The notes below the pieces were generated by a model. It did not search any database. It saw only the letters and a program-made list of their open reading frames with translations, and was not told the origin of the DNA. Below are positions 691-34,800 of a stretch of 64,000 nucleotides of DNA, piece after piece (the stretch's first letter is position 1; each line of letters starts with the position of its first letter). The DNA is taken from assembly GCF_009834535.1 (NCBI RefSeq), contig NC_045704.1:16616001-16680000 (forward strand). The letters run 5' to 3'. The position numbers and the translations under genes are program-made. The stretch is from Camelus ferus. Its lineage: Eukaryota.

Positions 691-769
691 ATGCAAATAA
701 ACCTCAACACATTTGTGCAGGTGGGAGCGAGGCCAGCCATGCAAATAACCTCTGGAAAGGAACTCTTAT

Positions 770-913
770 ATCCAGACCATGTCCCATGGAGGGTGAGACA
801 CAGAGTCTGGTTCCCAGTGCAGTTCATGATGGAAAGGGAGTCACATGGGGCCAACTTATCCCCAGAATAATAGTGACACTTCACCCCATTGGGCTGGGCT
901 TTGGGTCCTGCCT
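770..913 (-). pseudogene. LU gene exon 4, (E)AGPKAQPNGVKCHYYSGDKLAPCDSLSIMNCTGNQTLCLTLHGTWSG
   Basis: Acceptor cccactcccaccag, in phase with exon 3. PNGxxC start of a second LU domain. The 3' boundary is inferred (ataagag, probably a mutated gtaagag). Confidence 0.8.
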
Positions 914-1539
914 CTGGTGGGAGTGGGTATAGTCAGGGTGAGACGGGGCTGAGGTCCACCCACCTCTCAGCCCTCCTTCCCCCACCAGCCCTCTGGACCT
1001 GCTGCCTCCACCCACACCCCCCGGGGCACTTTCCTCCAAAGTGGGACCAGCCTAGTCTCAGCCACCTCTTTCCAGCCCTTGAAGACTTTTTCCAAGGAGC
1101 AGTGAACAGCACCTCTAGGTGGGGTTGGTCCTAAATTGCTCCTCTGTCCTAAACAAACCTTCAGGCTGAATCCTAAATGTTCTTTAATTAATTCCACAAA
1201 GATTTCTCGAGGACCTACTGTGTGCCAGGTTCTGTCCTGGAGATGCAACACTGACCACACAGGCAAAAGCCCTCCCTCAAAGACCCCGGCCTCCAAAAGT
1301 GATGAAAAAGTGAGGCTGGTGTTTCAGGTTTTAAGATGTTGTGGTGTTCTGCAAAAGAGTAGGACCGTGGCTTGCAGGTTCTCCACCATCTGATTAATTT
1401 GCAGAGTTTTCTTAGAAACCTGAAACACTTAAGAGGAAGCTGTCTAAGCATATTTTTCCTGAGTCAAAACTAAACCATGAATCGTTTTAATGGAGGTTTG
1501 TATGGAAACACTGGCAGATACAGAAAAGCAGATGAGAGA

Positions 1540-1850
1540 ACTGCGCTGGCTGACACGTGACTAGTGTCTCCACGTGGCTACTGAGCACCTAAAATGTGGC
1601 TGGTTCCCTTTGGGATGTGCTGTGAGTATAAAACACACCCTAGATTTCAGAGGCTTCATTTGAAAAAAGAAAGTACAATATCTCATTAGTAATTTCATAT
1701 TGATTATCTCCCTGTTGAAATAATATTTTAGATTTGTTGCTTTAAATAAGCTCTATTATTAAAATAAATGTCATCCATTTCTTTGTGCTTTTGAATGTGG
1801 CTACTCAAAAAGCTTTCATTCCCTGTATGGCTCACATTATGTCTCTGTGG
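1540..1850 (+). mobile_element. hAT-Charlie MER33-like element
   Basis: atgtggctactgagcac...gatgtgctgtgagtataaaacacacc...tggctcacattat resembles MER33 as recalled. Confidence 0.65.
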
Positions 1851-1855
1851 TAGCA

Positions 1856-1991
1856 GGGAGGGTGTAGCTCAGTGGTAGCGTGCAGTGCTTAGCATGCGCA
1901 GGGTCCTGGGTTCAATCCCCAGTACCTCCATTAAAAATAATAATAATAATTAATAAATAAACCTAATTACCCTCAAAAAATACTAAAAAAA
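1856..1991 (+). mobile_element. tRNA-Ala-derived camelid SINE (Vic-1-like)
   Basis: gggagggtgtagctcagtggtag...gggttcaatccccagtacctcca with A/B boxes and an AT-rich tail aaataaacctaattacc. Confidence 0.85.
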
Positions 1992-2752
1992 GTTTCTACG
2001 GAGAGCACAGCTGTGATCAAAGTATTCCTAGGTGGTCCCTTCAACCTTTCCTTGCACATAGGAGTTTTGTTTGAAGCAGTTATGATCATAACTGGCATTT
2101 TATGTACAGAATAGCATGCCCGCCTCTCCACCTGCCCCTGGCTATTTTATTTGGTTGATGCGGACAGTTTAAGAGAAGGGAAATCCCAGGGGTTTAGAAG
2201 GAAGGCTAGGAGCCCCGAGTGTGGAAAGGCCTCATTCTCCCCACTGCTACACCTGTCAAATAGATACAAATGCCTTCTTTGGAAAAAGAACCCGGCAGCC
2301 AAAAACCTGATCTTTATCACCACTCAGAGCCAGGTCTAGAGTGAGGCCGGTGAGGAGGGGCTCACTGTCCAGGTGGAGCAAATGCAGCGTCAGCACCTGA
2401 AAGCGAGCACCTCCCCTCACCCGGGATCTGGGCCCGTCCCCGCGCATGACATTTCTCGTTCTGCTTGGCTAACCTTCAGGGCAGCCCCTCTCCTAAGGAG
2501 AAAATAAGAGTCTGGGGCCTCTGCGCAGCCCCCCACCCCCACCCCGAGCTCTCAACAAGCACAGCTACCGTTTCTCAAGTGCCGACAGCTTTGTGCTGGA
2601 GGCACCCCCTGCCAAAGTTATTTCACACCCATTTTCCAGAGGAGAAAATGAAGGCTGTCTTTGCCTCAAGCAGCCAGGCAGAGCTGGCAACCAGGGCCAG
2701 GTTCCCGTGACACCCCACCCGGGTGTGTGACCCCCAGGCCCCGCTGACAGAC

Positions 2753-2901
2753 CTTGTTGGGCAGCCCTGCTGCCGTTGTTTGATTCACAGCAGGCTGTGC
2801 TGACCCGGAGACCAAGTCGGGGCTGTAGGTCAGGGCATAGACACCTTCTCAGCATTCCCTAGGGGCCACGCAGGGCCCGTGCTTGATGAGAGTCCCATTT
2901 G
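2753..2901 (-). pseudogene. LU gene exon 3, NGTLIKHGPCVAPREC*EGVYALTYSP/frameshift/GLRVSTACCESNNGSRAAQQ
   Basis: Acceptor ttctatcatcag, donor AAG|gtctgt, 149 bp, TGA at 2849-2851, degenerate CCxxxxCN motif. Confidence 0.85.
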
Positions 2902-3159
2902 CTGATGATAGAATTTAAGGAGAGGTTACAGACCCCTCCAACACCGCCCCCCCAGACCTCTGCCCACTCTGTAGCAAATCCCGGAGGTCAACCTGGGACC
3001 TCAGCTGGTGTGGACACCACCCCTCCCCGCTGCCACTCCCTGCGGTACTGAGCTGTGCTACCAGGCAAAGTTGGGAACCTCCAGGCCCAGGGCGGCCCGT
3101 CCATGCCTCTCCCCTCCAACCCCCTGCCCACGCACTTTGTCCATCCTCTCTGCCCCCAC

Positions 3160-3261
3160 CCAGCTGCAGCTGGCTAAACAGGCAGGAGTCCTGGGCCGGA
3201 GGACAGGTTCTCTCAGTGCAGTTTCCCAGCCAAGGGCAGACTGGATACATCTTGGAGGTCC
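3160..3261 (-). pseudogene. LU gene exon 2, TSKMYPVCPWLGNCTERTCPPAQDSCLFSQLQL
   Basis: Acceptor ctctctccccgcag, donor G|gtgggg, 102 bp phase 1-1. LU Cys spacing, with the first Cys replaced by Tyr (TAT). Confidence 0.85.
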
Positions 3262-3322
3262 CTGCGGGGAGAGAGGTGTGCTCAGACCTTGCAATTTGAG
3301 AAAGAGAACAAACACATACACT

Positions 3323-3324
<2 letters not shown>

Positions 3325-3378
<54 letters not shown>
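3325..3378. repeat. (CA)n microsatellite in LU gene intron 1
   Basis: Long ca dinucleotide run. Confidence 0.95.
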
Positions 3379-3379
<1 letters not shown>

Positions 3380-4338
3380 ATGATTCAAGAATAGATCTAA
3401 AGACTGAGGGTGGGAGGGGAGGGATGTGTGGAGAGCATTAAGAATGACTTTCCCCGCGGTGTGTGAATGGCATTCCAGGTGGGTGGAACAGTGTGGGCAA
3501 AGGTCTGGAGATGGAATCAGCCTCTCCAAGCTGGAGCTGCTGACAGTCTCCCTAATCTTTTAGGGCTCGCCATGGAACGCCTTCTCTCAACATCTCCCTC
3601 ACAACTGAAGAACAGGATAGATTAAAGTGTTATTTCCCTTCATCATCTGGGCTGAGAAGAGTCCTGTCTGTCCACTAAGCCTTCTTCTTAACCTCCCAGA
3701 GACCCCTGAAGCTTTTCCAAGAACCCTCAAGGCTCCAAGGAGCAGTCTGAAAACTGCTGACCTCATCTCATACCTTCCTTTTATAGATAAGGAAACTGAA
3801 GCCAGATGGACTTGGCATCTCACCCAAGATCACACAGTGAGACCCTGGCTAGGATCCTGTGATTCCCAGCCTGAGCCAAAGGTGGTAGAATTAGCACCAA
3901 CGGGGAGACAGGCAGGCCAAGGAAAGGAATAATAAGTTATTAATAAGAGCTCACCTTCAGACAAGGCTACATACCACCTGATACTACTCTAAGCTCTTAA
4001 AAAACTCCTCAAATGTATTGATTCAATGAATGCCCCCCATGGTCCCCAGATGCCAGGTCATTATCATCCTCATTTCACAGATGGGGAAACTAAAGCCCAG
4101 AGAGGTTAAGTGGCTTGCTCAAGGTCACAGAGCTAAGAAGGGGGCAGAGCCAGGATTACAACCCAGGCAGCTGGGCTTCAGAACTATGCTCTCAAACACT
4201 CCCGCCACTTGCCTCTGCTGGACGAACAGCCGAGTGTAGAAGGAGCCGGGGCTCAGACTCTGAAGCCAGAATCCCACCACCCGCTTGATTTTGAGCCAAC
4301 CCTCCCCCTCTCTGAGGGATCACACACAATGCACCTAC

Positions 4339-4393
4339 CTTCTGGGGCTGCCAGAGCGCCCAGGAGCGCCAGGGGAGGGAGGAGCCAGAGCAT
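4339..4393 (-). pseudogene. LU gene exon 1, signal peptide MLWLLPPLALLGALAAPE(G)
   Basis: ATG at 4393, hydrophobic leader, 55 bp, donor G|gtaggt. Confidence 0.85.
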
Positions 4394-5053: not shown

Positions 5054-5188
5054 NNNNNNNNNNNNNNNNNNNNNNNNNNNNNNNNNNNNNNNNNNNNNNN
5101 NNNNNNNNNNNNNNNNNNNNNNNNNNNNNNNNNNNNNNNNNNNNNNNNNNNNNNNNNNNNNNNNNNNNNNNNNNNNNNNNNNNNNNNN
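5054..5188. other. N gap (135 N)
   Basis: Run of N. Confidence 0.99.
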
Positions 5189-7038: not shown

Positions 7039-7176
7039 NNNNNNNNNNNNNNNNNNNNNNNNNNNNNNNNNNNNNNNNNNNNNNNNNNNNNNNNNNNNNN
7101 NNNNNNNNNNNNNNNNNNNNNNNNNNNNNNNNNNNNNNNNNNNNNNNNNNNNNNNNNNNNNNNNNNNNNNNNNNNN
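7039..7176. other. N gap (138 N) inside an MLT1 LTR (about 6815-7225)
   Basis: Run of N flanked by MLT1-like sequence. Confidence 0.95.
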
Positions 7177-8200: not shown

Positions 8201-11200
8201 TCCCCCTTCAGGTCTCAGTTTCTCTGTCTGGAAAGTGGAGGAAGAAGGGTGTGGACTTCAGGGGTTTCCTGGCTCTGCCAATCCCGAGGGTGATTCCTCT
8301 TCTGTGCCCCCGCTTTTACAGAGGAAAGCTGAGGCCCCAAGCGGAGATGCCCCCCATTTAGGAGGTGATCAGGCCAGGATGGGAAAGCTCATGAGTGTTG
8401 CCTGTCAGGCCTCCTGGAGTTAGGGAGGCAATGGCCACAGACCTGCCCCCACAATCAGCCCAGGACAGAGATGGTCACTTCCTCAGGCAGGTGGCAAGAG
8501 GCTGAGGGGCTCTCAGATGAGCCTGCATGCGCATAGTATCTGTCAGTCTCTGTCTTTGCTTTTCTTTCTTTGAAGGCAAGTGGAGGTCATTCTCCATAAC
8601 TCCATCTGTCAATCTCTCTCTCTCTCTCTCTGTCTCTCTGTCCTTCTATTTCTTGCTGTCTCTGTCTTCAGCTCTCAGTTGCTGTTTTCTCAGTCTCTGT
8701 CTCTGTCTCTGTCCCTCTCAGATGTCCCCTATCTGTCCGTCTTTGGCCTCTTACTCTCTCACTGTCTCTCCTTTCCTGTCTCCCTCTGTCTGTGTCTCTG
8801 TTTCTCTTGATCTCTCTCCCTCTTTGTCTCTACACGAGAGTCTCCTCTCCTCAGCCCCGGGAAGCCCCCAAAACCTGGGGGCCTCCCTGGGGACCCAGCA
8901 GACAGGTAGGAGCCAGGTGAGGCCCAGGTGAGTCACGAGGAGGAGGGACGTTCCTGCCGCTTTTCTGGGATGAAGCACGGCCCAGCCTCCTGCCTGCGCC
9001 CTCCTGTAACACGTCACTGGGCCTCACAAGTGTGTGTCACTTGTGTGTGTGAGAGAGAACGAGTCAGAGAGAGACACGGACAGAGAGACAGAAAGAGACG
9101 GAAAGAAGAAACAAAGATACAGAGATAGAGGGACAGAGAGGGAGTGGGACAGAGTCAGAACGAGAGACAGGGATGGAGAGAGACAAAGCAAGACAGAGAC
9201 AAAGAAAAAGATCAAAACAGAGAGGGAAAAAAGACAGACAGACACAGACAGGGAGACAGATGGACGGATTTCGGGAGACCAGAGCAGCCTGGGTAGAGAT
9301 GGGAGGGCTCCCAGACAGAGCTCTCATTCTCCCAACCAGGAAGGAAATTGCGGCCCAGAGCAGTGAGGTCATCCTGCCCGGAAGTGGTTAGTGCCAGACC
9401 ACGCAGCTCTGTGTGTCTCCAGACCTGAACTTACCTTCCACTGAGAGACGCCACCACCCACCCCAGACCCATTTCATAGCTGGAAAAAGGCAGGATCCAG
9501 GGATTGAAGCCACCCGCCCAAGGCCCCCCACGAGCAAGTGGGTGAGCTGAGTCTCAAACCCACCTGGACCAACACCCCATCTTTCTATCCCCCCACCTCA
9601 TATGCATTAATATCCCCTTCAGTCTTCATGCCAGTCCCGGGAGGGGTCCCATTTTCCACATGAGGAAACTGAAGCTCGAGAAGGAGGGTATCTGTTGATC
9701 TAGGGTGATCCAGCTAGGGGGTCAGCATGACAACCGCCATCCTCAGACTATGACTTCTCACCTCCCTGCTCATCCCCCAGAGAGGAACTGCAGGGCCAGA
9801 GTCTAGAGTCAGGCGTAACAACAATAGTGACGATGATTTTTTAAATTGAGCACGTACTATGTGGCAGGTGCCTCTTTTATGTCCCTAGCCCAACAGCCCT
9901 GGGAGGGAGGTACTGAGCTTTCCTTTCCAGATAATGGACTTGAGGCACAGAGAGGTTAAGTAACCTGCCCAAGGCCACACAGCTAATGAGCAGCTGAAAT
10001 TTGAACCCTCACAGTCTGGTCCCAACCCCCACACTCTTAACCACTAAGCTATACTGCCTCTTAGAAGAGAGAATTTCTTTGGGATTTTTCTCACTTTATC
10101 TTAAAATGATTACCTTAAGGCTCTGATGAATTAGTAAGAATCACAATTGTATAATCATTACCATAGTGTAGACAGAGCTACTGTTTATTCACTGCCTACC
10201 ACTGTGTCCCTCCTGATTCTGTTGCAGTCACACTGGCCTCTCTGCTGTCCCTAGATCTCATCAGGTCCACTCCCACGTCAGGGCCTTGGTACTGGCTATT
10301 TCCTCTCCCTAGAACTCTCCCTGGACCATCTGTCCGACTTCTTCCCTCACTACATTCAGTCTCTGCTCAAATGCCACCTCTTCAGGAAAGCCCTCCTGGA
10401 TCACTTGGCTTAAAACCAACCTCGCCTCACTTGTACCCTTGCAGTAACTTCAATCTGGTTTGTTTTTCTGCATTTTACTTATCACTGCCTGACAGCGATA
10501 GATTAGACAACGGGTATTTACTCCCTACTGTCACAGTCACAAGGACAGGGATTTTGTTTCCTGCTGTGTTCCCAGCTCCTGGACCTGTGCCTGGCAGGTC
10601 CTCGGTAAATGTTGAAAGAATCTGTTGAGCCTTGCATATGGGCCAGTGACTGTTTCAGGCATTTAATTCAACTGCACTAAATTGCTCTGACTGGTTAGAA
10701 GCATCTTGAGAGGGATAGACTATTTTATTGTTTGCACTTCATTTTCCTTTTTAAAAAACTTATTCTGAATCTTTACAAACACAGAGGAGACAGGTAAGTT
10801 ACTTTGATAAAATTGATACAGATATTTTGCTATTTTGCCTTTCTTTTTTCCTAAAGTGTTTTAAGGGAAAGGCAGACATCAATGACATTCAACCTCTAAA
10901 TATTTCAGTGAGCATCTGTAAAAAATAAGAAAAATTTCCCCGCATAACCACAAAACCATCATAACAGCAATACCTACTTTTTGGCTAAAGTGTTTTAAGG
11001 TAAACTGGAGCCATTATATTATTTCATCCCCAAATATTTCAGCGTCTAAAGGATAAAGACATTTTCCTACACAACCACAATACCATTATCCCTCCTAACG
11101 AAACTAACGAAAGCCCTATATGATCTAATAATCAGTCACAAATTTCCAGTGGGGAAGAGTTTTAATCCGAGGGCTGAGGTCCCTTGCCCATAGCAGGAAG

Positions 11201-11249
11201 AGAGAACAGAAAATTTGCACCCAGGCAGTCTATGACAGAGGTGACCACG

Positions 11250-11410
11250 GCCAACATGAGTCAGAGAGGAGCCGCCCCCCCCCCCCCCCCGACTCCAGGC
11301 TGGCCGCACCCTGAGAAGGAAGTTTTTGAGGAAGGAGGGAGGGTGCATGATAAACCACGCATCTGGGGCTGACTCGTTCTTTCGCAAAATTTCTGGGAGG
11401 AGCCCTCAGG
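11250..11410 (+). promoter_or_regulatory. PLAUR: PLAUR proximal promoter
   Basis: TATA-less. AP-1 TGAGTCA 11257-11263, C-rich tract, AP-1-like TGACTCG 11370-11376, GGGAGGAGCC near 11395. Same arrangement as I recall for the human promoter. Confidence 0.75.
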
Positions 11411-11484
11411 GCCACAAAACTGTCTCCTTCGTGGGGCCAGACTGAGAGGTGCAGGGAGACCACGGAGAGGAGCAGCCGCCGGAC

Positions 11485-11551
11485 ATGGGCCGCCCGCCGC
11501 TGCTGCTGCCGCTGCCGCTGCTGCTGCTGTCAATTCAGGCCAGCATTCCAG
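11485..11551 (+). CDS. PLAUR: PLAUR exon 1, signal peptide [22 protein letters not shown]
   Basis: ATG in context gacATGG, donor G|gtaggg. Confidence 0.95.
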
Positions 11552-14500
11552 GTAGGGGGTGGGGCCCGAATCCCAGGGGACAGGGTCCGATGGCCCGGAA
11601 GGGAGTGGGGAGGGGAGGGGAAGAGAGCTCAGAGTCTGATGAGTTGGAGAAGGGCGCAGTCTCCAGGCCCCCTTCCCTCCAACTCAAGTAATTCTCCTGC
11701 TGTCTGCAGCCCCACACGATACAGCACCTGGCACATAGCAGACATTCAGGAAGTAATAGATGAGTGAAGGCACTTAACAACCACGATTTAATGAGTGCGC
11801 TCTTTATTCTAGGCACTCTCCTAAGCGCCTTCCTTGCAATTTCGAACTTGGCAGGCGGAACAATTTAGCTCACAGAGAAGGAAAAGGAGGCACAGAGAGG
11901 TGAACTAAGTGACCCGAGGTCACTGAGTAAGTGGGATTCTGACTCCGCAGAGGCTCCCACATCGCTCCTCACTATGTCTGATTCCGCCCCACCACCCCTC
12001 ACCAACACACACACTGACACGCAGACACACTTGGAAGACAGAGCTCCTTATACAAAAGGGCTAACGAGAGTCAGGCTGAACGTGGCAGGGCCAGGCGCCG
12101 GGGACCCAAGCCTTGTCCTTCGAGGAGCCTTCCTTTTCACTGTCCTCTAGCCGACACGGCCCTCTCACTCCCTTTCTCTGGAAAATGTAAAAAGGTTTGA
12201 AAAACGAAAGGAAATAGAGAAGGAACTGTCAGGGCGGGGCGGGAGGTGGGGGAAGGGGCTGGGAGGTGGTTGGGTAATGAATAACTCGGAAAACTTTCCG
12301 GGCCGCGGGAGGCCAAGAACGAGTAATGACTCGGGAGGACTCTGAATTTGGAGTGGGGAAGGGACCACGGAGGAGCTCTGGTGCGCAGGAAAAGGCCTTG
12401 GGGCAGGGCTAGTGGGCGGGGCTATAGCACTGGGGCGGGGATAGTGGGCGGGGTCAGAATATTGGGGCGGAGCCAGTGGGCAGGGCTAATAGCTCGGGAA
12501 CAGCTAGTCGGCGGGGCGAACACTGCAGAGGAGGCCACTTTAGTTGGGGTTAGAATCTCCGCAGGGCTCATGGGCGGAGTTAGAAGTTTGGCGCGAACTA
12601 CTGGGTGGCGACAGAACGCTGAGGGGAGGCCACCAAGGGGAGTAGAACCTGTGGGCATTAGCGGGGGGCACCGGGAACGGGGGTAGAAGGTAAAGATCGA
12701 CTGGAGTAGGTGAGGATAGGACACCCCGAGGAGAGCTCACGAGGCGGAATAGACCGAGAGAGGGCAGGTGGGGTTGGGGAAAGGACCTAAATGGGAGCAG
12801 GGCTAAAACGTCCAGACCTGCAGAGATGGTGGGGATCGGCCTTTCGGGATAGGTCCTGCGCGCAGACAGGATCACGGGGAAAACGTGCAGGGGCAGGAAG
12901 TAGGAAGGACCTGTGGGCCGCGAAGGAACGGTAGGGTAGAAGGCGGAGATAGAACGTTGGTCTAAAGATAGCCTGTAATTACAGCCCGCGGGAACCCAGC
13001 CTAGGAACCGAAGGGCGGGCCGAAGTGGAGCGTGAACCTGAGTGCACAGGGCCTGGAGACCTGATGCTGGTATCGGGGCTCCAGGGGGCGAGAGGCGGAT
13101 CCTGGTGCGGAGCAATAACACCTGTCCTCTCCTCTCCTCTCTCTGCCTCAGCCTCCTGGGGACTGCAGTGCATGCTGTGTAAAAGCAACGGGAATTGCAG
13201 GGTGGAAGAGTGTTCCCCCGGCCAGGACCTCTGCAGGACCACAATCCTGCGCATACGGGAAGGTGAGCTCCCCGACTCCAGCGTGGCAGAGAATGCCGAG
13301 TGACCAAGAAATCTTACCTCACAAGAAATAAGGGAAATGCGCATGAAAATGACAAGGAGACCCGTTTCACGCACACCAAATCGACAAGCGCTTAAAAATC
13401 TGACAATACTGAGGTCAATGAGGATGTGGTGCTGCCAACCCTGCTATTAGGAGGGTAAATTGGTGCATCCACCAAACAGAGCGATGTGGCAATGTCTGGT
13501 ACAGATAAAGATTAGCATACCCTACAGCCAGCCGCTGGACTCCTAGGAATATAGAGACCTCAAGCACCTTGGCCACCCGTGACCAGAGACACATCTATAA
13601 GAATGTTTTTTAGCAATAATGTTTGTAATATGGAAAACTGGAGACACCCTGAAGTCAGGCGTTAGCAGAGGAGAAACATGACGGTATAATCACACATTTT
13701 ATACCCACAGCAGCTTAAATGAAGGAATTAGGGCTGCAGGTTAAACATAGATACTTCCCAAAAACATAAAGTTGAGAGAGAAAAAAGCATGTTGCAGAAT
13801 CTGATACCTTTTAATATAAATAGTATAGAGCAACAAAAAAAGTAAACAATATACAAATAAACAATAGTATACACTGTTAAGTATACATGGTATGAGAATT
13901 ACCTACACCTCCGGACAGGGCATAAAGGGAATGGGATTTGGGGAGGTAAGCAGGAGGCTTTAAGTATCTTTTAAATTTGGTATCTTGTTTTAAAAAAATC
14001 TGAAATAAATATAAGCAAAATGATAATATTTTATAAAGTTTGATGATGAATGCACAATATTTATAATATCATTCTTTAATACTTTTTGGTAAGCTTGAAG
14101 CATTTTCCTTTAAAGATTCCTATTTGAGGCATCTCCCTGTCAAGTTGACCAAGTTGGAAGGGAGGGGTTGATGGATCGAGAAGGTCCCAGGGATAGGGTT
14201 GTCACTAAGAGAAAGTAGGCTCCCAGTGTAGAGGGGTGGGGGAGAGGGTGGATAACTCTAGAAAAGACAGAGTTGGACTCAAGCTAGAGGAGAGGATTGG
14301 TAGGGGTCAGCCCTGGGAGTGGGTGACCTTATAACCAAGAGTGTCAGAGGCTGGTTGGGCCCAGAGGAGCCTCTGGAGTGACAAAGAGACTTCCCTCACA
14401 GGAGATGAGGAGCTGGAGGTGGTGGAGAGAGGCTGTGCCCACCCAGAGAAAACCAACAGGACCATGAGCTATCGGATAGACATGCAGATCATCACCCTTA

Positions 14501-17500
14501 CAGAGTTCATCTGTGGGTCAAACTTGTGTAACCGGCCCAAACCGAGTGAGTATGGCAGCCCTGGCCCTCCCCAACCCCAAACCATCTCCAACCCAGCCTC
14601 ACCATCATCCTGGTCCTGTCCCCAATCCTAGGCTACCCCAACCCCAACTCCATGCCTTACCCCACTGCCAACTCCAACTCAAACCTTTCCTTATCCCAAA
14701 CACATCTCCAGCCTGGCTCCATCCCCATCCTCGGCCCCAACTCAACCTCACTTTCAACCCCATCCCCAACTTCATTTTACTGTCAACATTCTCCAACTCA
14801 TACCTGTTCTCCTTCCAAACACATCTCTAACCCCATCCCCTAATCAACCCCACCTCATCTCAGACTGTCCCCAATCCCTCTACCAACTGCAGACTCACCT
14901 CCATCCCTAATCCTATCCCATCCCATATGTGTTTTACGTGTGTGTGTGGTTGTTATGCATAAGAGGCAACACCTGCCTTTAAGAAGCTACACACACACAC
15001 ATACACACACTCAAAAGGTAAGTGAGGTATCTCACTGATGTTTTGCCATCTAATTTTTTTCATGGGACAGGAGATGGTTCAGGCAGTAGGTGCTTAGTTT
15101 CTTGATCCCTTAAGAAGGGACCAAGATACAAAGACCAGAGAGATACCAGAGACTGAAAGTCCTTAAGGGAAGTAAAAAAAGGAGGGAATCAGACAGGGTG
15201 CTGTGGGCTTGGGAAGTCCCCGGGAATACACGATCCTTGTGTTGGGTGGTGAAAAATGATGTCAAGAAAGTTCACAAAACCTTTGATTGTTTCATGGATT
15301 TAGGCTCTGGTCAGTTTAAGAAAAAGACTACAAAAGGCTCAAATTTCCCCAAATTCTCACAAGAGAGGAAGGGTGGGGAAAGAATGGACCCTTGTTGCCT
15401 GGTCAGGCTGAGATTCCTCTTTCTGGCCCTAGTGAGGAAGGAAATAGGTGAGAAAGCCAGTCTCGTCACAATGACATCAGTAAGCAGAGTGACTTCATCT
15501 ATGCTGGGTTTTTGTTTGTTCCTCATCCCTCCTGACTCTGTTTGATTTTCATTCATCCTAACCTCAAACTTTCATCTGTTGGTGGGGACTGATTCAGACG
15601 TTTGTTTTCAAGGAAGTGACAAGACAGAGGATGCCAGCTTCCTCTCCCTGTTAGATGTGCTGAAGGAAAGCACTAACATTGAGTCTAAGTAATACTTGTA
15701 ACCAGAGATCATAGTCCAAATATTTAACAGTCCTGGGCATTGCAGAAGGCGTTGACCAAGCATAACAGGCTCCCCTGGAGCCTCCTGCTGGGTCTGGTGT
15801 GGGTCTCAGGGACATGTGGGTTTTAAAGAGAGTTGGGTGTGGTCAAGGATCCACCAAGGAGCTTGGGCAGCAGCTGTTAATTCAGTAATTTAACAACTGA
15901 TAAACCTAGATCAGCCCCATTTCTAATGCCATCGTACCCTGCTTGTGGTGACTAGAAGGTTGGTTAAACCGCATCCTGCCCTTATGTGATACTGGGGACA
16001 CAGCAAGACCAAGGCAGCCTTGGGCCCCATGGTCCACTGTGTTTTTGGGTATGTGTGTGGGGGGAGGGTGGTGGTAACAGACTCATCACCAGACAGTGAC
16101 TGCCCAGATGATTCAGAGCTGGGATAGGGGAGCACAGGCAAAGGGGTCAGGACCATGATCAGGGAAACAGACCAGAGAGGTCAGAGATGTAACAGGGAAG
16201 CACAGTTCAGGGCTGAGATAAGGGAAACAGAGGCCCGAGTGATCAGGGCTGAGATGAGTGAAGAGTAAGGGCTGTGGACCCTAGGGGAGATACTTGATTC
16301 AGGTCAGGGAAGGTTTCCTACAGGAAGCATCAGCTAACCTAGATCTTGAGGGATGAGTAGGAGGCAGACTGATCAAAAGACAAGGGAAAGGATTTTTCAG
16401 ACGGAGGGAGCAACAGATACAGAGGCCCAGAGGTGGGTGAAAGTAGCATGGCTGGAGGAAGGGAAGGATGGGACAAGAGGAACTGATGAAATTGGTGAGG
16501 TCACATTACATAGGACCTTCTAGGCTGTGGTGGGAAATAGAGATTTCATCTGGGGAACAGTAGGAGGTCATGAAAGGGTTTAAATAGAGTGTGCCAAGAT
16601 CCGGTTTGTATTTTTGAGCAAATTATTCTGACCTCTGACTGGAAGATAGATTGCAGGGAAGCAATGATGGAAAGCGGGTAAATGAGAGAGGACCAACTTG
16701 GAGGTAGGTGAGATTGTCCAGATAAAGAAAGAAGTGTCCGCTGTGCCCATGGAGAGAAGTGCACGGATTTAAGGGCTATTTAGCAGGTAGATAAGCAGGA
16801 CTTTGCGATGGATTAGACGTAAGGAGTGGTTTGCAGTTCTGGTCATGTGGAGTCACTTGTATCGGATCAACCCCCTTGCCAATAACAGCTATAAACCCTG
16901 GACAAACTATAAGCAATTTTTTTTTTTGGTTGGGGAAGTAATTAGTTTGTTTTTTTTTAACGGAGGTACTGGGGATTGAACCCAGGAACTCATGCCTGCT
17001 AAGCACACACTCTACCACTGAGCTATACCCTCCCCTGCCTCCCCATAAACAATTATTGAAGTAACTCAAGAGCAGCAAATGAAGAAAGGAAGTGGCGGTG
17101 CTCCAATCTTTGAAATAAGGGAAGCACAGAAGTTGCATTCCACAGACAAGCTGGCTTTTTCCTTGAGTGCACTTTCCAACTCGCTGCTGTGGAAGGGAAA
17201 TAGAACACAAATAGAAAACGATCGTTGCTAGACTGAGAAGGCAGAGGTTGGAGTCTGGGGCTGCCAGAGTGTCTGGAAAAATGAGAAGTAAAATCCTAGA
17301 ATGCATGGCACCACAGGAAAGGGAGTCCCCAAATCTGCAAATTTCCTTCAGTGCATTGGCAAGCTGTACATGCATAGGGTGAGACTCCAAGAAACTCTAC
17401 AGAAAATAGTCTCTGGGAAGCTACAGAACTGAGCAGAGACTCCAGCAGGCATATGATGCTGGGGGAACGAAGTTGCCAAGTTGGAAAGAGAGGTCTCGGG

Positions 17501-20500
17501 CTTTCCTCTGAGACCACGTGCTAGGAGTTAGGGCAAAACTGAAATAGACCAGACCCCAAAATGCCTACATCTAATCTTTGACAGGAATAAAACTGAATCC
17601 TCTTTGGAAGAAGATAACATCATTTAGAGCCGTGACAAATTGTCATCTATGTCTGGCATCTAATCAAAACATACAAGATATCCTGAAGAAAATAGAAAGA
17701 ACCAGCTGACCAGAAACCAAGAGAAAAATCCCACAGTAAAAACAGACATATCATGAATCAGATATTGGAGTTACTAAACAGGGAACTTTAAAATAGCGAT
17801 GATCAACATAATCAAGAAAACAGAGGAAAGGATAATTTTTAGTGGATATCTGGAATCCATTTTTAAGATGAGTCAAACAGGAAACAGAGAACAGTGGCTA
17901 AAATTAAGAACTCAATAGATGGGCTTCGTGAAGATCAGAAACAGCCAAGCAAAAGGATTACAGAACTTGAAGACAGGGAAGTGGGAGTATCCAGACTGAT
18001 GCCTAGATATGGAGGATCAAGGAGTCTGCCAGGTTTCTACCCTGGGGGACTGGATGAGACCATCTCAGAGGTGTGGAATTCAGGAGAAGGAGCGATTTGG
18101 AGAAGATGGAGAGTCCCGTTTGGGGCATATAGAGATTCAGGTGTTTGACGGACGGCCAGGAGACCTCCAGGAGGCACTTGGGGGTACAGGTGTGGGGATG
18201 TGAAGGCCGCCATTTTGGCAATAATGGTAATTCATGCTTCCATTTTCATGGGAGTTCACGTGAGAGGACATGGGTTGTTGGCCTTTCAGTTTTATTCTTT
18301 TGGGGATGGTTGGTGAGAAAGATTTGGCTTTGGCTATAAATGATTCACCGGATTACAGCTGCTGGCCTGCCAGTTGAGAGCCTTGGCGGAGACAGCCCTC
18401 TAATTTCTCTAAGACTTGGCCCAAACTCAACTTGGACATCTGGGGTCAGGAAGGGGAGGGCATGCCAGGCTTTAGAGCAGTGTGAGCCAAGACCTGGGCA
18501 GAGGAATGACTGGTGTTTCCAGGGAAAATTAACTCTTAATCCACTTGGCCTGGATTGGGAGGTCTGTGTGAGAGGCCAAGTTATCACAGCTCCATCACAT
18601 GAAGCTTTGACCTCTGACACAATTGGGTAGTGTTTTAATTATCTATTGCCACAAAACTTAAAAAAATAAGCATTATTATTTCACAAAGTTTTTGAAGGTC
18701 AAGAATCTGGGAGTGGTTTAGCTAGGCAGTTCTGGATCTTTCATGAGGTTGTAGTCAGGGTTTGACAGTGGGCTGCAGTCATCTGAAGGTGCCCAAGGTA
18801 GTGTCTCTCACGTGGATGATCTGCACCCATGGCTTTGGCCAAGGCCTCTGTTCTTCACCACATAGACCTCACGGTGGGGCTGCTTAAGTGTCCTTACAAC
18901 ATGGCAGCAGCTGTTCTCCCCCAGAGCAAGTGATTGAAGAGCAAGTGATTGAAGAGAGAGCCATGCAGATGTGGTGATGTCTTACATGATCTAGTGCAGA
19001 AGTCACACATGTCATATCCACAATATCCTATTAGTTCCACAGGTCTGGTCAGCTCTATTCTTTTCTTGTTTTTAATTTATTAAGCAGCTGTTTTATTTTA
19101 TTTTGGGGGTTTTGGGGGGAATAATTAGTTTTTTTTTAATTAATTTATTTTTTAATGGAGGTACTGGGGATTGAACCCAGGACCTTGCGCATGCTAAGCA
19201 CGCACTCTACCACTGAGCTATACCCTCCCCTGAGCTCTATTCTTTATTGGAAGGGACTACACAAGGGCACAGGTATAAGGAAGCAGGGATCATTGGGGGT
19301 CATCTTGGAGGTTGGCTATCCCAGGGAACAACATAAGGGTTTTAAGGAATTGTTCATTCATTCATTCATTCATTCATTTAACAAATATTTATTGAAGATC
19401 ATGGCCCTGGCCCCTGTGCTGGGTCATGTTGGGACATAGTAGTGACCAAGACAGCCCTGGCCCTACCCTCCTGGGATGGACTCCAATAAGGGAAACAGAC
19501 TTGGCACCAGACAGGGATGACCCAGAATGGGCAGGGCTGGAAATGGGGAGCCCAGTAGGGCACCTGATCCAGCCTGGGAGGTCGAGGAGGGCTTCTTGGA
19601 GGAGGTGAAATTGGAGAAGATGACCCCTGAAGAATGAGTAGGAGATAGGGAAAGTGTTCTAGGCAAAGGCAACAGCAGATGCAAAGGCTGGATGACACGC
19701 AGCAGATACACTCGGGGACTGAGGGAAGTCAGTGTGGAGCAGAGTCTGAGGGGGTAGTGGAGGTAGATGAGGCAGGAAAGGTGGCCAGGACCCAGCCTTT
19801 GATGGGCCTTGAATGCTACACTGAGTTTCTTGGATTTAATTCTGAGAGCACTGGGGACCCATGGAGGGGTTTTGAGCAGAGGAGAAGCAGGGTTGGATTT
19901 GAGTATTAGAAGCATCCTTCTTGGGCCATGTGGGATGCTCTGGGGTGAGAAGGGCAAGAATGGAAACCAGGAGGCCAGAGAGGAAGCTGGTTTTGAAGGA
20001 GGTCTGACCTGATCATGAAGCTGGAAAGGAGGGGATGGATTCTAGAAAGTTTCAGGAGTTGGAGTGGGCGGAACTTGATGACTGGCTGAAGGGTGGGATA
20101 AGGAGGAACTGATGCTGAGGGAGCTGGGTCTCTAGGGCTCTTCCCAGAGTCTTACCCTCCTGCTCCTCCCCAAACAGGTCGGCCTCCTCTCTTTCCTCGA
20201 AGGCGTTACCTCGAATGTTCTTCCTGTGCCTCATCAGACCTGAGCTGTGAGAGGGGCTGGGACCAGAGCCTGCAGTGCCACAACCCTGGAGAACAGTGCC
20301 TGGAGGTGGTAACTCACCGGAGCCTAGAAGGTGGGTCCCAACTTGCCAATCCACGCCTCCCTGCTTTGCTCCTCCCCAAGGCTGCACTAAACAACCCCAA
20401 AATAACAGGGATTTAAGCAAGGCACAAAGTTAGTACTCACACAAAAGATCCAGTGATAGGAAGTCCAGGGCCACTAGGACCGTTCCACAGTCACCAGGAA

Positions 20501-23407
20501 TCCAGGTGCCTTCTCATTTCTTACATATTGCTTCCATTCTCAAGATTGCCTCATAGTCCAACATGGCTGCTGGAACTCGAGGTCTCAAGATCAAGTTCCA
20601 GGAAAGAGGAAGGGGAAAAGAAGGGGCAAAAAAGGGGCATACCTCCTTTTGTAACAATTCTCCTTTCTGGAAGTCCCATAAAACTTTTCTACTGTAGATC
20701 ACACTGACCAGAATTTAGCCACATGGAGGCTGGAAATTGCATCTTTTGGCTGGAATATATGGCTGCCCCAAAGAAAATGAGGGTCTTACAATGAAGGATG
20801 AAGCAGAGGACAGACAGTCAACTGCTGCAGTGGGCAAATCCAGTCTCAGCCCACATTAGCAATCTGACCTCCTCCTCTGCCCCCTACAGAGAGTCCAAGG
20901 GATGAGCGCCACACCCGAGGCTGTGGCAACCTTCCAGGATGCCCAGGCCCAACCGGCTTCCACAATAACCATACCTTCCACTTCCTGCGGTGCTGCAACA
21001 CCACAAAATGCAATGGGGGCCCAGGTAAGAGTCAGGGGATCCCCGGGATCGGGGCAAGGAGGTATGCTCAGGCTGACTGCTGCTCGCTGGCAGGCAAACC
21101 CTCCTCTCTGTTTCCTTCTCTGAAAAATGGACCTATCAAGCCCTCCCTCAAAGAAGGATTCTGTGAGAAATTCAATGAAACTAGCAAATCTTCATGAATA
21201 CCCATGCTTTATGCCCCTACATCCTCTTCAGTCCTTCCACGGCTCACCACCTGGTCCAAGCCACCATGGCCTCCCACCTAGATTGCTGCAATGACCTCCC
21301 ACCTAGATTGCTGCAATGACCTCCTTGCTGGTCTTCCTGCTGCCTCTCCTGCAATGTTCAACACAGCTGCAAGAGTGGTTTTTTTTTTTTTTTTTAATGT
21401 AAATCAGATCATGTCACTCTCCTTCCGCAAACACTTCAATGACTTCCCCTTGCTTTTAGAATGAAACCCAAAGGCTCTCCTAGATCCTATGTCTGCCTCA
21501 TGGTCTTCATTTCATTTCTACAACTGCCAAATTCCATCCTGCCTCATGGCCTTTGCACATGCAGTACCCTGACACACAATCTTCCCCAGGAGTTCACCTG
21601 ACTGGCTCCTTCTCATTTGTTGAGTCTCAGCTATAAAGCGTCATCCTCAGGGAAAACTTCCCTATCTCTGCCCTCCAGTATCATCTATATCATTTGTGTT
21701 ACTCTGTCTCTATAAACTAGTACTGTCCAACAGAACTTTCCACGGTGATGGAAAGGTTCTATATCTGTACTGTCCAATATGGCAGCCCTGGCCACCTATG
21801 ACTACTGATTTCAATTTAAATGTAAACAACCACTTGGGGCTGGTGGCTATCATATTGGACAGTGTAGCTCTAAATTGTAAGTCCTCTGAGGGCAGGGACT
21901 GTTTTGTCTTACCCAGTACCTGGATAGATACGGGTGAGTGGGGAGCTGGGAGTTGGGATTTCTCTCACAGGCCCTAGAGAACCCTCCAAAGAGGGTGCTG
22001 TTCAAATGCCTGACCACAAGGGGGCTGCACGACATCGCGCGCGTGCTGGGGAGGTAACGCTGTGAACGCTCTGTGCTAATTTCCGTGGTTTCTGGGTCAC
22101 TTGTCTTCTCCCAAGTCCTGGAGCTTCAAAACCTGCCACTGAATGGTTTCCAGTGTTACAGCTGTGAGGGGAATAGCACCCATGGATGTTCCTCCGAAGA
22201 GACTTCCCTCACTGAATGCCGAGGTCCCATGAATCAATGTCTGGAAGCCACAGGCACTAATGGTGAGGCCCTTTAAGAGGCTGGGAGAGGATGCTTCGTG
22301 GAGGGGCGGGGGTTCTGCAAGAGGTTAACTTCCCGTTAAGCTGGACTTAATTGACGTGGACCTTCCTGTTGGAAAAGGTAGGACTTCTTTCAGGAGGGTG
22401 CAAAGAGTAGTAAGGAATTAGGACTTGTTCATTGGAAAATGGTCATTTCGGCCACAGAGATGTGGACTTCTTGGGGGTGGGGCTTCCCGTAGGTGGGCGG
22501 GCCTTCCTGCGGACTTGGTGGGATTCCATCCCACGAAATACTGGGCGGGTTCTAATATTCCAGGGGTTCTCAAGCTTTTGGGTCTCAAAACGCCTTCGTG
22601 CTCTTAAAAATTATTGTTTGTGTCAGTTATACCGATACATATTTACTGTATTCAAAATTAAAACTGAGAGATTTTGAAAGATGTATTTATTCATTTTAAA
22701 GAACAATTGAAAACTCATTGCGTGAGAGCGTAACATATTTTTATGGGGGTTGGGGGAAGACATTTTCCAAAATAAAAAAAACTGAACGAGAAGACTGGCA
22801 TTGTTCTGCCATGTTGCAATCTCTTTAACATCTGGCTTAATAGAAGACAGCTGGATTCTTCTGTCTGCTTCTCATGTCTTGTCTGTTGCAAGATCGCATG
22901 TCTTGAGGTTTCTGGGAAACCCTATTGTATACTTGTGAGAGCAAAAAAAGTCATATGACGTTTTAGCATTATTATGAGAATACTTTTGACTTCGCAGATC
23001 CCCTGGAAGGGTCAGAGGGAACCCCAGGGGGTCCCGGGACCATACTTAGAACTGTTGCTTTCTCTGGGCAGCATTCACAAGGTGGCACGTCGCCCAGGGA
23101 TTCCAGGCCAGGCCCGAGAGCTGGGAGCCTCACACGATCTTCTCTCTCCTCAGGGCTGGGGAACCCAAGCTACACCATAAGAGGTTGTGCAGCCCCCTCC
23201 TGGTGCCAAGACCTCCAGGTGGCTGAAGCCTTCGGCCTCACCCATGTCAACGTCTCATGCTGTACCGGAAATGGCTGTAACAATCCAGCCCTGGACATCC
23301 AGCCCCGCATTGGGGGCGCCCACCAGTCTGGCCCTGCTCACCTCAACCTCATTGTCATCCTGCTTGTGACAGCCCGACTCTGGGGAGGCGTTCTCCTCTG
23401 GACCTGA
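11485..23407 (+). CDS. PLAUR: Urokinase plasminogen activator surface receptor (uPAR/CD87), 7 exons, 1011 bp, 336 aa
   Basis: Exons of 67+111+144+153+135+147+254 bp, all GT-AG and phase 1; three LU domains and a GPI signal. Confidence 0.98.
13152..13262 (+). CDS. PLAUR: PLAUR exon 2
   Basis: [36 protein letters not shown]. Confidence 0.97.
13340..14110 (+). mobile_element. Old L1 (L1ME-like) fragments in PLAUR intron 2
   Basis: aaaatctgacaatac...gaggatgtgg...ggtaaattggtgca L1 3'-region motifs. Confidence 0.55.
14402..14545 (+). CDS. PLAUR: PLAUR exon 3
   Basis: [24 protein letters not shown]...[11 protein letters not shown]. Confidence 0.97.
16916..17035 (-). mobile_element. tRNA-Ala-derived camelid SINE
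   Basis: ggaggtactggggattgaacccagga...actgagctataccctcccc. Confidence 0.85.
19064..19232 (-). mobile_element. Young tRNA-Ala SINE with perfect 13-bp target-site duplication
   Basis: TSD agctctattcttt at 19051-19063 and 19233-19245; intact A/B boxes. Confidence 0.9.
20178..20330 (+). CDS. PLAUR: PLAUR exon 4 (not in the ORF track)
   Basis: [50 protein letters not shown]. Confidence 0.96.
20890..21024 (+). CDS. PLAUR: PLAUR exon 5
   Basis: [44 protein letters not shown]. Confidence 0.97.
21718..21867. mobile_element. MER3-like hAT MITE, internally deleted
   Basis: ctgtccaacagaactttc...atattggacagtg terminal inverted repeats. Confidence 0.7.
22116..22262 (+). CDS. PLAUR: PLAUR exon 6
   Basis: [48 protein letters not shown]. 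Confidence 0.97.
22561..23057. mobile_element. hAT-Charlie DNA transposon fragment in PLAUR intron 6
   Basis: caggggttctcaagctttt start, ggtcccgggaccatacttagaac end. Confidence 0.6.
23154..23407 (+). CDS. PLAUR: PLAUR exon 7 with GPI signal
   Basis: ...[23 protein letters not shown]...[12 protein letters not shown]. Confidence 0.97.
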
Positions 23408-31800: not shown

Positions 31801-34800
31801 TCTCTGAGTCCCTCAGTCTCTCTTCTTGTCCCCCTACCCTTGTCCTCGTCCCTCAGTCTCGAAGTCTGTCCCTCTCTCTGTCTCCCTTTCTCCTTGCCTC
31901 TCTGTCCCCCACCTCTCTACCCTGTCTTTGTCCCCCACTTCTGTCCCTTGGTTTCTGTCCCTTTTTACAGGGTCACTCTGCCCGCTCCTCATCATCCTCT
32001 CTATTCCCTTCTCTGTCCCCCTGTATTTCTGCCCTCCCTCTCTGTCCCCATTCTCCCTCTCTGTCCCTGTCTCGCTGTCACCTCTGTTTCTCTGTCCCCA
32101 TCTGTCCCATTCCCTTGTCTCTCTGTCCCTCTCTTCCTGCCATTCCTGTTTTGCTAGCGCCTTCTGTCACCTGTCCCCCGCACTCCCCACTCTCCCTAAT
32201 GCCCTCTCTCTGTCCCACTGCCTCCCTGTCCCCTGGCTCTCCACCTCCCCTCTCTCCCCTTACATCTTCCATCCTGAGATCCCCATTGCCATCCTTCATT
32301 TCTCCGTGTCTCTGTCCCTCTCTTCCCCTGGAGAGGAATTGAGTCAGGCAGGGCATCTGAAGGGCCCTGGTGGGAAATGTGTGTGTGGGGGGGGAAGTGC
32401 ACGGGGACCCTTGACATGTGGGCACACACGTGGAGTCAGCAAATGCCTCCCAAACGCTGCCCCTCCCCACCCATTCACACACCCAGGCCATGACCTACAG
32501 AGAAGCCCCCTCCAGGACATCCAGAAAGCTCTCCGCATACCCTTATCACACACTGGAGAAAGCTGGAGACCTCCCAGATAGGGTGACCCTGAGACCAGGG
32601 ACAAGGTCAGGAAATGTCACCCCCATACTCACACTCTCGCGCTGTGTGTGCCTCATACCTGCCACGGATCACCCCCTCCCGGTGGGGAGAGCCACTCTGG
32701 GGGGAATGGATGCTTGGGAGGTGGATGGGCAGATGTGGGAGGGCTAGATGTCCTGTAGAGATTTGAGAAAGGAATGTAACCAGATGGCACAGGGCTGGGG
32801 GCCTCCCTGGGTGTAAATCCTGGCTCCTGCCATTTGCCGGAGCAGCCAATGGCAAGCGTCCTCCTCTTTCTGGGCCTCAGTTTCCCTTTCTGTAAAATGA
32901 GGACGTTGCACTTGGTGACCTGAAAAGAAAGGTACTCCAGTTTGGACCCCCGAAGGGGTTTCTGGCAAGTTGGGTGCAGGTACACCTTTGCCACTCTACA
33001 GTTTGAGGCAGAGCCTCCCACTCCTCTTTCAGGGACAAGGAGAGGGGCAGAGCTGACCTCTCACCCTCTGCCTTGCTTCATTCTATAGTCTTCTGCCATC
33101 ACGTCAGAACTTTCACCATTACCCCCTTTCTTTGTGCAGACACACCACAATTTACCAGATGAGCTCTTTGATACTTCAGCTGTATCTCCATACAGTTCTG
33201 TTTTTCTTTCTTTGTTAGGCCCTTAAAACCAGGCTCATAGACTCCTAGGACCAATGAATCTAGTAAACAAAGAACCTGAGGGTATTTTAGATGTTGACAT
33301 CTTTCGGATTCCAGAATCCTAAAGTCTTTAGAATCTTGGCACCTTTAAAATTCTGGAACCTTGCTGGCATTAGATTCTAGCCTCCTGGCATCTTTAGAAC
33401 TCTGAAGCCTTGATGTCTTGAAGATCCTGAATCTTGACATGTCTAACATCTAGAATCTTGACAGTTAGAATCATGGTGCTTTGGATTCACAGAATCAGAA
33501 TATAGCCTAAGATAACCACCTACCCAGTTTAAGAATCTTTTTCTAGCACTTCTGGAAGGAGGTAGTCCTACAGGCTTGTCCCTTGCTTAGTTTTAAACTC
33601 ACTGCTTCCTGGTACCCTAAACCCTTCTGTAAACTTTCTTTAAATTAGATGGCATGGGCTTTACAAGTTGGGAGAGAGCTGGGTATCACGGGAAGCATTC
33701 TGAAACCAGGCCCCTCTGGTGTACTTCTGGGCCAGCCCCTGCCCTGTCCCTCTCTGAGCCTCGCTTCCCCTTGTGTTAAGCATGGAGTAGGCAGCTGGAG
33801 TACCTGATCTCAGAGGACCCTGCCTGCTTTTATTGTCATCAGATATTTCTGAATGGCCTTGGCCATCAGATTTTAGGAGGTGTCCATGGTACCCACATTT
33901 CCCTTTTAGTCACTCGCCTTCCTCTCTCACCTTGCCCAGCTGGCTGGGGTGGGGATGGGAGATGGGCTTCGTTTATGCCCTTTCAAAAATGTAGTCTCTC
34001 TTTCCTGGCTCAGTCTTCTGCCAGGAATAGCAGAAGAGGGTGATGAGACTTATGCCAAAAGAAAGAAGGGTCCAGGGTGGGTGGGCGAGAGGAAGTGGGA
34101 GAGAGATGGGTTGCCTGCCCAGAGATGCACAGGCAGAAACAGAGACCCTTCAGGCCAGGAACTGGATAGATCAGAAAGGAACAGAGGAAACAGATACCCA
34201 GATCCAAAGATAAAGAGGCTATTAAGAGTTGGGGGGCTTCGTGGAGGGACAGTTTGTTGATCCCGAATAATGTTTTCCTCCCAAGTGACTCATTTTCCCC
34301 TCCCTCCTAAAGTTCTGACTGGCCACTCTAAGAAGAGGGTTCTGTCACTGATCCCCACCCACCCATGAGCCGGATGCCTGAGTCCCCAGAGCGGAGGTCA
34401 GGTTCCGCAGTGGATTCCAAGATCTTAGACACAGCAGGGCTGGGGCCTGGGGTGGGTTAATGTCGTGCGAGCCTGGCCTGTCCCCATCTTGGGGAACACA
34501 AAGGCAGCTTTCTCTCTGGGGGCGGTGGGTGCTGGGAGACAGTCAGACTTGCCAGCACCCAATGGCCTGTGGCACCAGGACCCAAGCACCCACTAGTTCC
34601 CGCCTGTGCAGACCCCAAGCCCAAAGGTCCTCTGGGAACCAGGCCCCATGGCTCCTTAGCTGGTCCCCAGTGGGGCAGGGGGGCGGCAGCAGAGCCCGGG
34701 CTCTTCTGGAGGGGGGTGAATAGAGGGCACAGGGGGTGGAGGCTAGGACAGTGAGCGCTCAGTGCAGACTTCCCGGAGCAGGAATTGTTCCCCTGACCCC

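Follow-up and report, generated by a model that had tools for sequence, protein, structure and literature searches.

In the published censuses of human and mouse Ly6/uPAR (LU) genes, the cluster around PLAUR comprises LYPD4, CD177, TEX101, LYPD3, PINLYP, PLAUR, LYPD5 and SPACA4, to which the mouse adds Lypd10 and Lypd11, and no gene is listed between PLAUR and LYPD5 (PMC4839075; PMC6600238). The N-terminal LU domain of the mammalian multi-LU proteins is described as having no 7-8 disulfide (PMC6600238). Here we analyze a 64,000-nucleotide stretch of Camelus ferus DNA (contig NC_045704.1, positions 16,616,001 to 16,680,000; hereafter the window), in which PLAUR lies on the plus strand and four short exons lie head-to-head with it on the minus strand. 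A preliminary description of the window had assigned these exons to an LU-family gene that is dead in this lineage. Our results make it very probable that they are the first four of the nine coding exons of a unitary pseudogene, whose ancestral gene encoded a protein of approximately 420 residues with four LU domains.

Exon structure of the camel locus and its intact orthologues

When the minus strand is read and the four exons are translated (Table 1), exons 2 to 4 are found to carry AG acceptors and all junctions are in phase 1. The exon positions of the preliminary description are reproduced, and its peptide is regenerated exactly. Their combined product is a signal peptide followed by a complete LU domain and the initial half of another. 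When the 47-residue exon 4 peptide is searched exhaustively with HMMER against 1.8 billion representative proteins, it identifies predicted mammalian proteins at 60-80% identity (E = 1e-11 to 5e-18), and the orthologue proteins match exons 2, 3, and 4 of the window in order by tblastn. The camel conceptual translation aligns over its entire length with 17 orthologues, and the first 150 residues of the intact 423-residue chinchilla protein parallel the camel peptide residue by residue. The camel locus is also collinear with the buffalo locus across 16 kb. These matches, with the exon structure that the orthologues share, bear out the assignment to a multi-exon LU-family gene.

The window is 99.9% identical to the C. 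ferus scaffold KB016480.1, which is the locus of the sole camelid match (CB1_000185012). This scaffold extends 17.5 kb past the left end of the window, and the orthologue proteins map there to nine coding exons. The window therefore holds exons 1-4 of a nine-exon gene.

Table 1. Positions in the window of the pseudogene exons, their lesions, and the first two coding exons of PLAUR
Feature	Position	Strand	Evidence
Pseudogene exon 1 (55 nt): start codon ATG at 4393, encodes signal peptide; GT donor, phase 1	4339..4393	-	Aligned with exon 1 of four intact orthologues; C. ferus model has the same ATG
Pseudogene exon 2: LU domain 1, first half, 102 nt, AG...GT; Cys1 codon TAT at 3245-3247 (orthologues TGT)	3160..3261	-	
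Pseudogene exon 3: LU domain 1, second half, 149 nt (orthologues 147), AG...GT; holds TGA, frameshift, insertion and Cys>Gly	2753..2901	-	
Pseudogene exon 4: LU domain 2, first half, 144 nt, AG acceptor; Cys2 codon TAT at 867-869; last base T (orthologues G)	770..913	-	
Cys1 of domain 1 to Tyr (TGT>TAT)	3245-3247	-	DNA alignment
In-frame TGA, product truncated at 69 residues	2849..2851	-	CGA in buffalo, sea lion and bat; CAA in slow loris; identical in C. ferus assembly
Frameshifting 1-nt deletion; an A stands here in the orthologues	Between 2813 and 2812	-	DNA alignment
3-nt insertion, extra Ser codon inside the CC...C motif; exact place ambiguous in the alignment	~2781-2783	-	DNA alignment
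Cys10 of domain 1 to Gly (TGC/TGT>GGC)	2772..2774	-	DNA alignment
Cys2 of domain 2 to Tyr (TGC>TAT)	867-869	-	DNA alignment
Exon 4 last base G>T	770	-	DNA alignment
Exon 4 splice donor AT, not GT (orthologues G|gtaagg)	768..769	-	DNA alignment
PLAUR coding exon 1: ATG at 11485, signal peptide, donor GT at 11552	11485..11551	+	5' ends of the sea lion, bat and slow loris 332-335-residue UPAR_LY6 genes align here
PLAUR exon 2: uPAR domain 1, first half	13169..13294	+	phmmer E = 7e-11 to solved uPAR chains

Four intact orthologues (buffalo, sea lion, sac-winged bat, and slow loris) have nine coding exons separated by GT-AG introns, all in phase 1, with exon lengths of 55/102/147/144/141/126-132/165/147/218-242 nt; exon 3 of the orthologues measures 147 nt, or 141 nt in one bat. 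The signal peptide occupies its own exon and each LU domain is split across two exons, an arrangement that agrees with the PLAUR-like layout of two exons per domain proposed at the outset. The accompanying proposal of only two LU domains does not hold. The consensus of 22 orthologue sequences features a signal peptide, four LU domains with 10, 8, 10, and 8 invariant cysteines, and a hydrophobic C-terminal tail of GPI (glycosylphosphatidylinositol) type, which is seen in all orthologues. The N- and C-terminal halves of the intact protein share 31% identity (E = 1e-22), indicating that a two-domain unit was duplicated in tandem. A 1,941-nt spliced Logan contig encodes a complete 418-residue orthologue, and a mature spliced mRNA therefore exists in at least one species. 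Judging from its tail, the intact protein would be GPI-anchored, and by analogy with PINLYP and CD177 it could act at the cell surface or as a ligand trap.

Domain 1 of the orthologues retains Cys7 and Cys8 (GSC...GEC...CC..C), and thus all ten cysteines, which would make this family an exception to the published 7-8 disulfide rule for N-terminal LU domains. In every orthologue, domain 2 has eight cysteines and no CCxxxxCN motif; an exon with a second such motif had been expected to the left of the window, and the motif was never there. We note that the Cys2-Cys3 pair of domain 2 is broken in different ways, with Cys2 replaced by Tyr in the camel (867-869) and by Ser in the dolphin (Delphinus locus ~15055-15201), and Cys3 replaced by Gly in exon 4 of the buffalo. 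Sea lion, bat, and slow loris retain both residues. Constraint on this disulfide may have been relaxed early in Cetartiodactyla, as judged from the codons of the three lineages looked at. The dolphin gene model begins inside exon 4.

Lesions of the camel gene and competing explanations

Lesions were called base by base from exon-wise DNA alignments with the four intact orthologues, and this comparison upholds the view that the gene is dead in this lineage and intact in other mammals. The in-frame stop codon of exon 3, together with its derivation from CGA and the truncation at 69 residues, is recovered as proposed, and so are the Cys>Tyr replacements in both CxxC motifs. Two other proposals stand in part. 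Exon 3 is indeed 149 nt long, though not as a 150-nt exon that lacks one base: the ancestral length of 147 nt was altered by a 1-nt deletion and a 3-nt insertion, and the reading frame on entry to the camel exon differs from the frame on exit. At the end of domain 1, where a change of Cys-Asn to Gly-Ser had been read, the cysteine is lost; the loss of Asn falls away, since the next residue is not Asn in the orthologues. The alignments add the AT donor (769-768) and the terminal T of exon 4, which were absent from the preliminary description.

The exons beyond the window, as read on the C. ferus scaffold, contribute TGT>CGT in exon 5 and both TGC>TGA and TGC>CGC in exon 9, with the exon 9 stop falling on an invariant Cys codon. 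The camel has changed six of the 35 Cys codons that are invariant in the four intact species, as compared to one of 37 in the buffalo and none in the three other species. The ancestral gene shows the cysteine spacing of the LU superfamily (CxxC near the start and CC...C near the end of the domain), of which the camel copy is six cysteines short.

Across the 5 kb that span the exons, five positions distinguish the window from the C. ferus scaffold; every one is intronic, and the exons are identical. Six sequencing runs of unlabelled type, which are probably DNA, contain 100% of the sampled words of 2740-3270. Several runs, one of them under a second species label, contain 96-100% of the sampled words of the region, arguing that the lesions are fixed. 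No further camelid protein of the family appears among the database matches of either the full-length query or the profile search. The locus has thus kept its introns and its ancestral position, carries disabling lesions, and has no intact camelid copy among those matches. Because the lesions appear to be fixed and no other camelid family protein is found among the matches, the locus is best described as a unitary pseudogene. In terms of mechanism, the CpG-type CGA>TGA transition would halt translation at residue 69. Given the exon 3 frameshift, the loss of the exon 4 donor, the six Cys codon changes, and the second stop in the last exon, the full protein can no longer be made. Any camel transcript would be expected to undergo nonsense-mediated decay.

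Some observations weigh against this assignment. The ratio of nonsynonymous to synonymous substitution rates (dN/dS, parsimony-based) is 0.75 on the camel branch, which is not above the 0.78 of the buffalo branch; the values for sea lion and bat are 0.58 and 0.35. The comparison across orthologues suggested in the preliminary description can thus be made, but it does not set the camel branch apart. This family evolves fast outside its cysteines, and for that reason dN/dS alone does not reveal loss of constraint. Branch-wise dN/dS was dropped as a test of pseudogenization here, as the camel and buffalo branches are not separated. Furthermore, exons 6-8, which code for all of domain 3 and the initial half of domain 4, are open in C. 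ferus with all their cysteines. Finally, four RNA-seq runs from one study labelled "reproductive system" account for 43-75% of the words sampled from the exon 2-3 region, so the locus may still be transcribed. Two of these runs contain 65-75% of the words of the whole 3.8-kb stretch, introns included, a pattern compatible with genuine expression and also with unspliced RNA or carried-over DNA.

The open exons 6-8 and the presence of much of the locus in reproductive-system RNA would also be expected if a shortened functional product persisted. This could be a secreted protein comprising domain 3 and a portion of domain 4, made by splicing exon 1 to exon 6 (both phase 1), or a regulatory non-coding RNA in reproductive tissue. 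The existing C. ferus gene model does make this very junction. CB1_000185012 (246 residues; KB016480.1 locus 10001-21936) starts at the exon 1 ATG and joins exon 6, skipping exons 2-5. It also skips part of exon 9 and takes an unusual path through the last intron, and every lesion is thereby avoided. Such avoidance is typical of an annotation pipeline; the model is a patchwork, and a pseudogene call should replace it. We consider a persisting product improbable for several further reasons. The exon 9 stop at an invariant Cys codon and the additional Cys>Arg replacement mean that the loss extends to domain 4 and the GPI tail, and domain 3 has acquired an unpaired cysteine in C. ferus. The RNA runs include intron words, which may reflect unspliced RNA or DNA carry-over, and no spliced camel contig was seen.

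There is next to no likelihood that the living animal has an intact gene and that errors of assembly or sequencing produced the lesions. Assembly errors usually take the form of single-base indels and substitutions, but the window holds at least eight separate lesions, all of which are identical in the independent C. ferus assembly. Three more lie downstream, and many runs contain 96-100% of the sampled words. It is just as hard to credit that there is no gene relic at all, only chance open reading frame (ORF) fragments or a duplicated piece of PLAUR: the exon peptides are not scored by the Pfam UPAR_LY6 model and in the PDB exon 4 has a single, weak sequence match, to domain 3 of uPAR (E = 0.58), but orthologues in four other orders share the exon boundaries, phases, and position, and identity to PLAUR is approximately 15% at the fold level.

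For the unitary pseudogene, the timing of the loss can be approached in two ways, and the results disagree. The six Cys codons lost, against approximately eight expected if the whole branch were neutral, suggest an old loss, whereas the low indel count suggests a younger one.

Neighborhood of the locus and distribution of the gene

PLAUR begins on the plus strand with a signal peptide typical of uPAR (Table 1), and its later exons follow on the same strand, which substantiates the head-to-head arrangement. In sea lion, bat, and slow loris, a UPAR_LY6 gene of 332-335 residues lies upstream on the opposite strand, and the orthologues are head-to-head with PLAUR in every locus that extends far enough. 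The start codons of the pseudogene and PLAUR are 7.1 kb apart, and the two are divergent neighbors that do not share a tight bidirectional promoter. Runs of N at 5054-5188 and 7039-7176 fall inside this interval, and its promoter view is incomplete. Going by gene order alone, we place the pseudogene on the side of PLAUR that IRGC would occupy in human. The gene called next on the C. ferus scaffold (521 residues; 31839-31936) begins approximately 10 kb past the last exon of the pseudogene on the same strand; we presume from gene order in other mammals that it could be IRGC.

Two repetitive elements were encountered in the introns. ARAGORN reports a tRNA-Ala-like element with A/T-rich flanks in intron 3 (1858-1930, plus strand), and the C. 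ferus scaffold carries another copy, 76% similar, farther along. The element is most likely a tRNA-derived short interspersed nuclear element rather than a tRNA gene. Intron 1 contains, shortly before exon 2, a long (GT)n microsatellite (3330-3395) that yields several spurious Cys/Val-rich ORFs.

Searches with the full-length chinchilla query and then with a 22-sequence profile recover more than 50 relatives. These come from hystricognath rodents, squirrels, strepsirrhine and Old World primates, tree shrew, many bats, carnivores, ruminants, cetaceans, mole, xenarthrans, and afrotherians, with one possible marsupial sequence. Cluster listings add cattle LOC512005 and dog LOC102153805 as well as deer, goat, bears, mustelids, and cats. 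The camel gene belongs to the orthologue group of cattle LOC512005, dog LOC102153805, and chinchilla LOC102018034, as shown by reciprocal similarity over the whole available length, shared exon boundaries, and position divergent from PLAUR. The suggestion that this might be an unannotated LU member intact in other mammals is correct as to its integrity elsewhere. It is not correct as to annotation: nearly all relatives, in dozens of species, are carried by NCBI as "uncharacterized protein LOC...", and a few are auto-labelled PINLYP-like, CD177 or RoBo-1, none of which amounts to a real name. A literature search under six LOC identifiers found no paper on the parent gene, which is thus pipeline-predicted, yet unnamed and unstudied as far as we found.

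The primate models differ considerably in length. Colobine monkeys have full models of 418-421 residues, whereas the human and gorilla "PINLYP-like" models are 183 residues long, cover the C-terminal half only, and begin inside domain 3. Both read CCQGNYQ where the orthologues have CCQGNCQ, placing a Tyr at a conserved Cys. These short models suggest truncation or ongoing decay of the gene in humans and African apes.

We tentatively propose, as a view that has somewhat less than the balance of likelihood behind it, that the parent gene adds an unrecognized ninth member to the multi-LU cluster around PLAUR at 19q13. The protein, a "double PINLYP" of GPI type, would comprise four LU domains and retain the 7-8 disulfide in domain 1. 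Its gene would date back to the ancestor of placental mammals or earlier, and a marsupial homologue is possible. It would have been overlooked because there is no detectable mouse copy and the human and gorilla models have only 183 residues. Decay would have occurred independently in camels and, in part, in hominids, some cats, and some cetartiodactyls. The camel loss itself is a matter of routine annotation, one more lineage-specific gene loss. The wider value lies in the parent gene, a well-conserved four-domain gene beside PLAUR in cattle, dog, bats, colobine monkeys, guinea-pig relatives, and others, which is missing from the published censuses. Its predicted two-domain unit resembles proteins of the phospholipase A2 (PLA2)-inhibitor type, and its domain 1 appears to contravene the stated 7-8 disulfide rule. 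The repeated losses offer a natural experiment on the purpose of the protein.

Family placement and comparison with described LU proteins

Sequence searches place the family only loosely. Pfam PF00021 (UPAR_LY6) gives no match for the window exon peptides and none at E <= 1 for four full-length orthologues, and precomputed PF00021 matches exist only for a few orthologues; the family is too divergent for this model. In the PDB, the exon 2 peptide has no sequence match and the exon 4 peptide has the weak uPAR match given above. The sole profile match in the PDB is CD177 (E = 0.047); one PDB match from a second profile was rejected as spurious. The profile search of a large protein database did not reach the named paralogues.

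Predicted structures are more informative. The AlphaFold model of the full-length protein has a mean predicted local distance difference test score (pLDDT) of 56. Its significant Foldseek matches are all multi-LU proteins, led by CD177 and uPAR, with template modeling (TM) scores below 0.35. A model of domains 1 and 2 (D1-D2), built from an alignment in which the two halves of 21 orthologues were pooled, reaches a pLDDT of 76. Foldseek identifies mouse and human PINLYP as its best matches (TM 0.72/0.62 and 0.67/0.60, E ~1e-9), followed by rat RoBo-1 and then by snake gamma-type PLA2 inhibitors (PLI-gamma) and LYPD8. The solved structures that it matches are uPAR, C4.4A, TEX101, and CD177. The model thus points to a three-finger fold, with TM up to 0.72 and a probability of 1.0, both sides of the best matches being predicted structures. 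The resemblance to PINLYP and gamma-type PLA2 inhibitors that had been noted for the camel exons is borne out in the fold comparison at the level of the repeating unit, and the intact protein would consist of two PINLYP/PLI-gamma-like two-domain units. Membership of the PINLYP orthologue group was considered and is ruled out by position, length, and an identity of approximately 20%.

Comparison with the individual described proteins shows how the present gene differs from each. PINLYP, the best fold match to the D1-D2 unit, is itself a two-LU-domain unit from the same chromosomal cluster, and several orthologues of the present gene are labelled "PINLYP-like" by NCBI. However, identity is 20-22%, and PINLYP is one two-domain unit of approximately 200 residues, whereas the present gene has two units and a hydrophobic tail. 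The present gene is also a separate locus directly beside PLAUR, and hence a paralogue. The snake PLI-gamma proteins (subunits A and B, CNF, NAI, and PIP) share the two-LU-domain unit with the model at TM 0.54-0.66 (E = 5e-7 to 4e-5). They are secreted oligomeric serum proteins with approximately 20% identity, and the likeness is a fold resemblance alone.

CD177 shares the overall architecture, having four LU domains that arose by duplication of a two-domain unit, a GPI-type tail, and a place in the same gene cluster. It is the top Foldseek match of the full-length model, and one orthologue is labelled "CD177 antigen" by NCBI. Identity to CD177 is 18-19%, the full-length model is poor (pLDDT 56), and CD177 maps elsewhere in the cluster (PMC4839075). 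PLAUR/uPAR has LU domains that are each encoded on two exons with phase-1 introns, and it is among the significant Foldseek matches. In contrast to the present protein, uPAR has three domains and its domain 1 has no 7-8 disulfide (PMC6600238), while domain 1 of the present protein has all ten cysteines; identity is 13-20%.

Rat RoBo-1 (O55006) and LYPD8 are two-LU-domain proteins with TM of 0.64-0.72 to the D1-D2 model, and one langur orthologue is auto-named "protein RoBo-1". With approximately 17-20% identity and a single unit in each, orthology is unsupported. TEX101 provides the sole significant sequence-level PDB match, between domain 4 of the present protein and TEX101 domain 2 (E = 1e-3), though this match is weak and covers one domain only.

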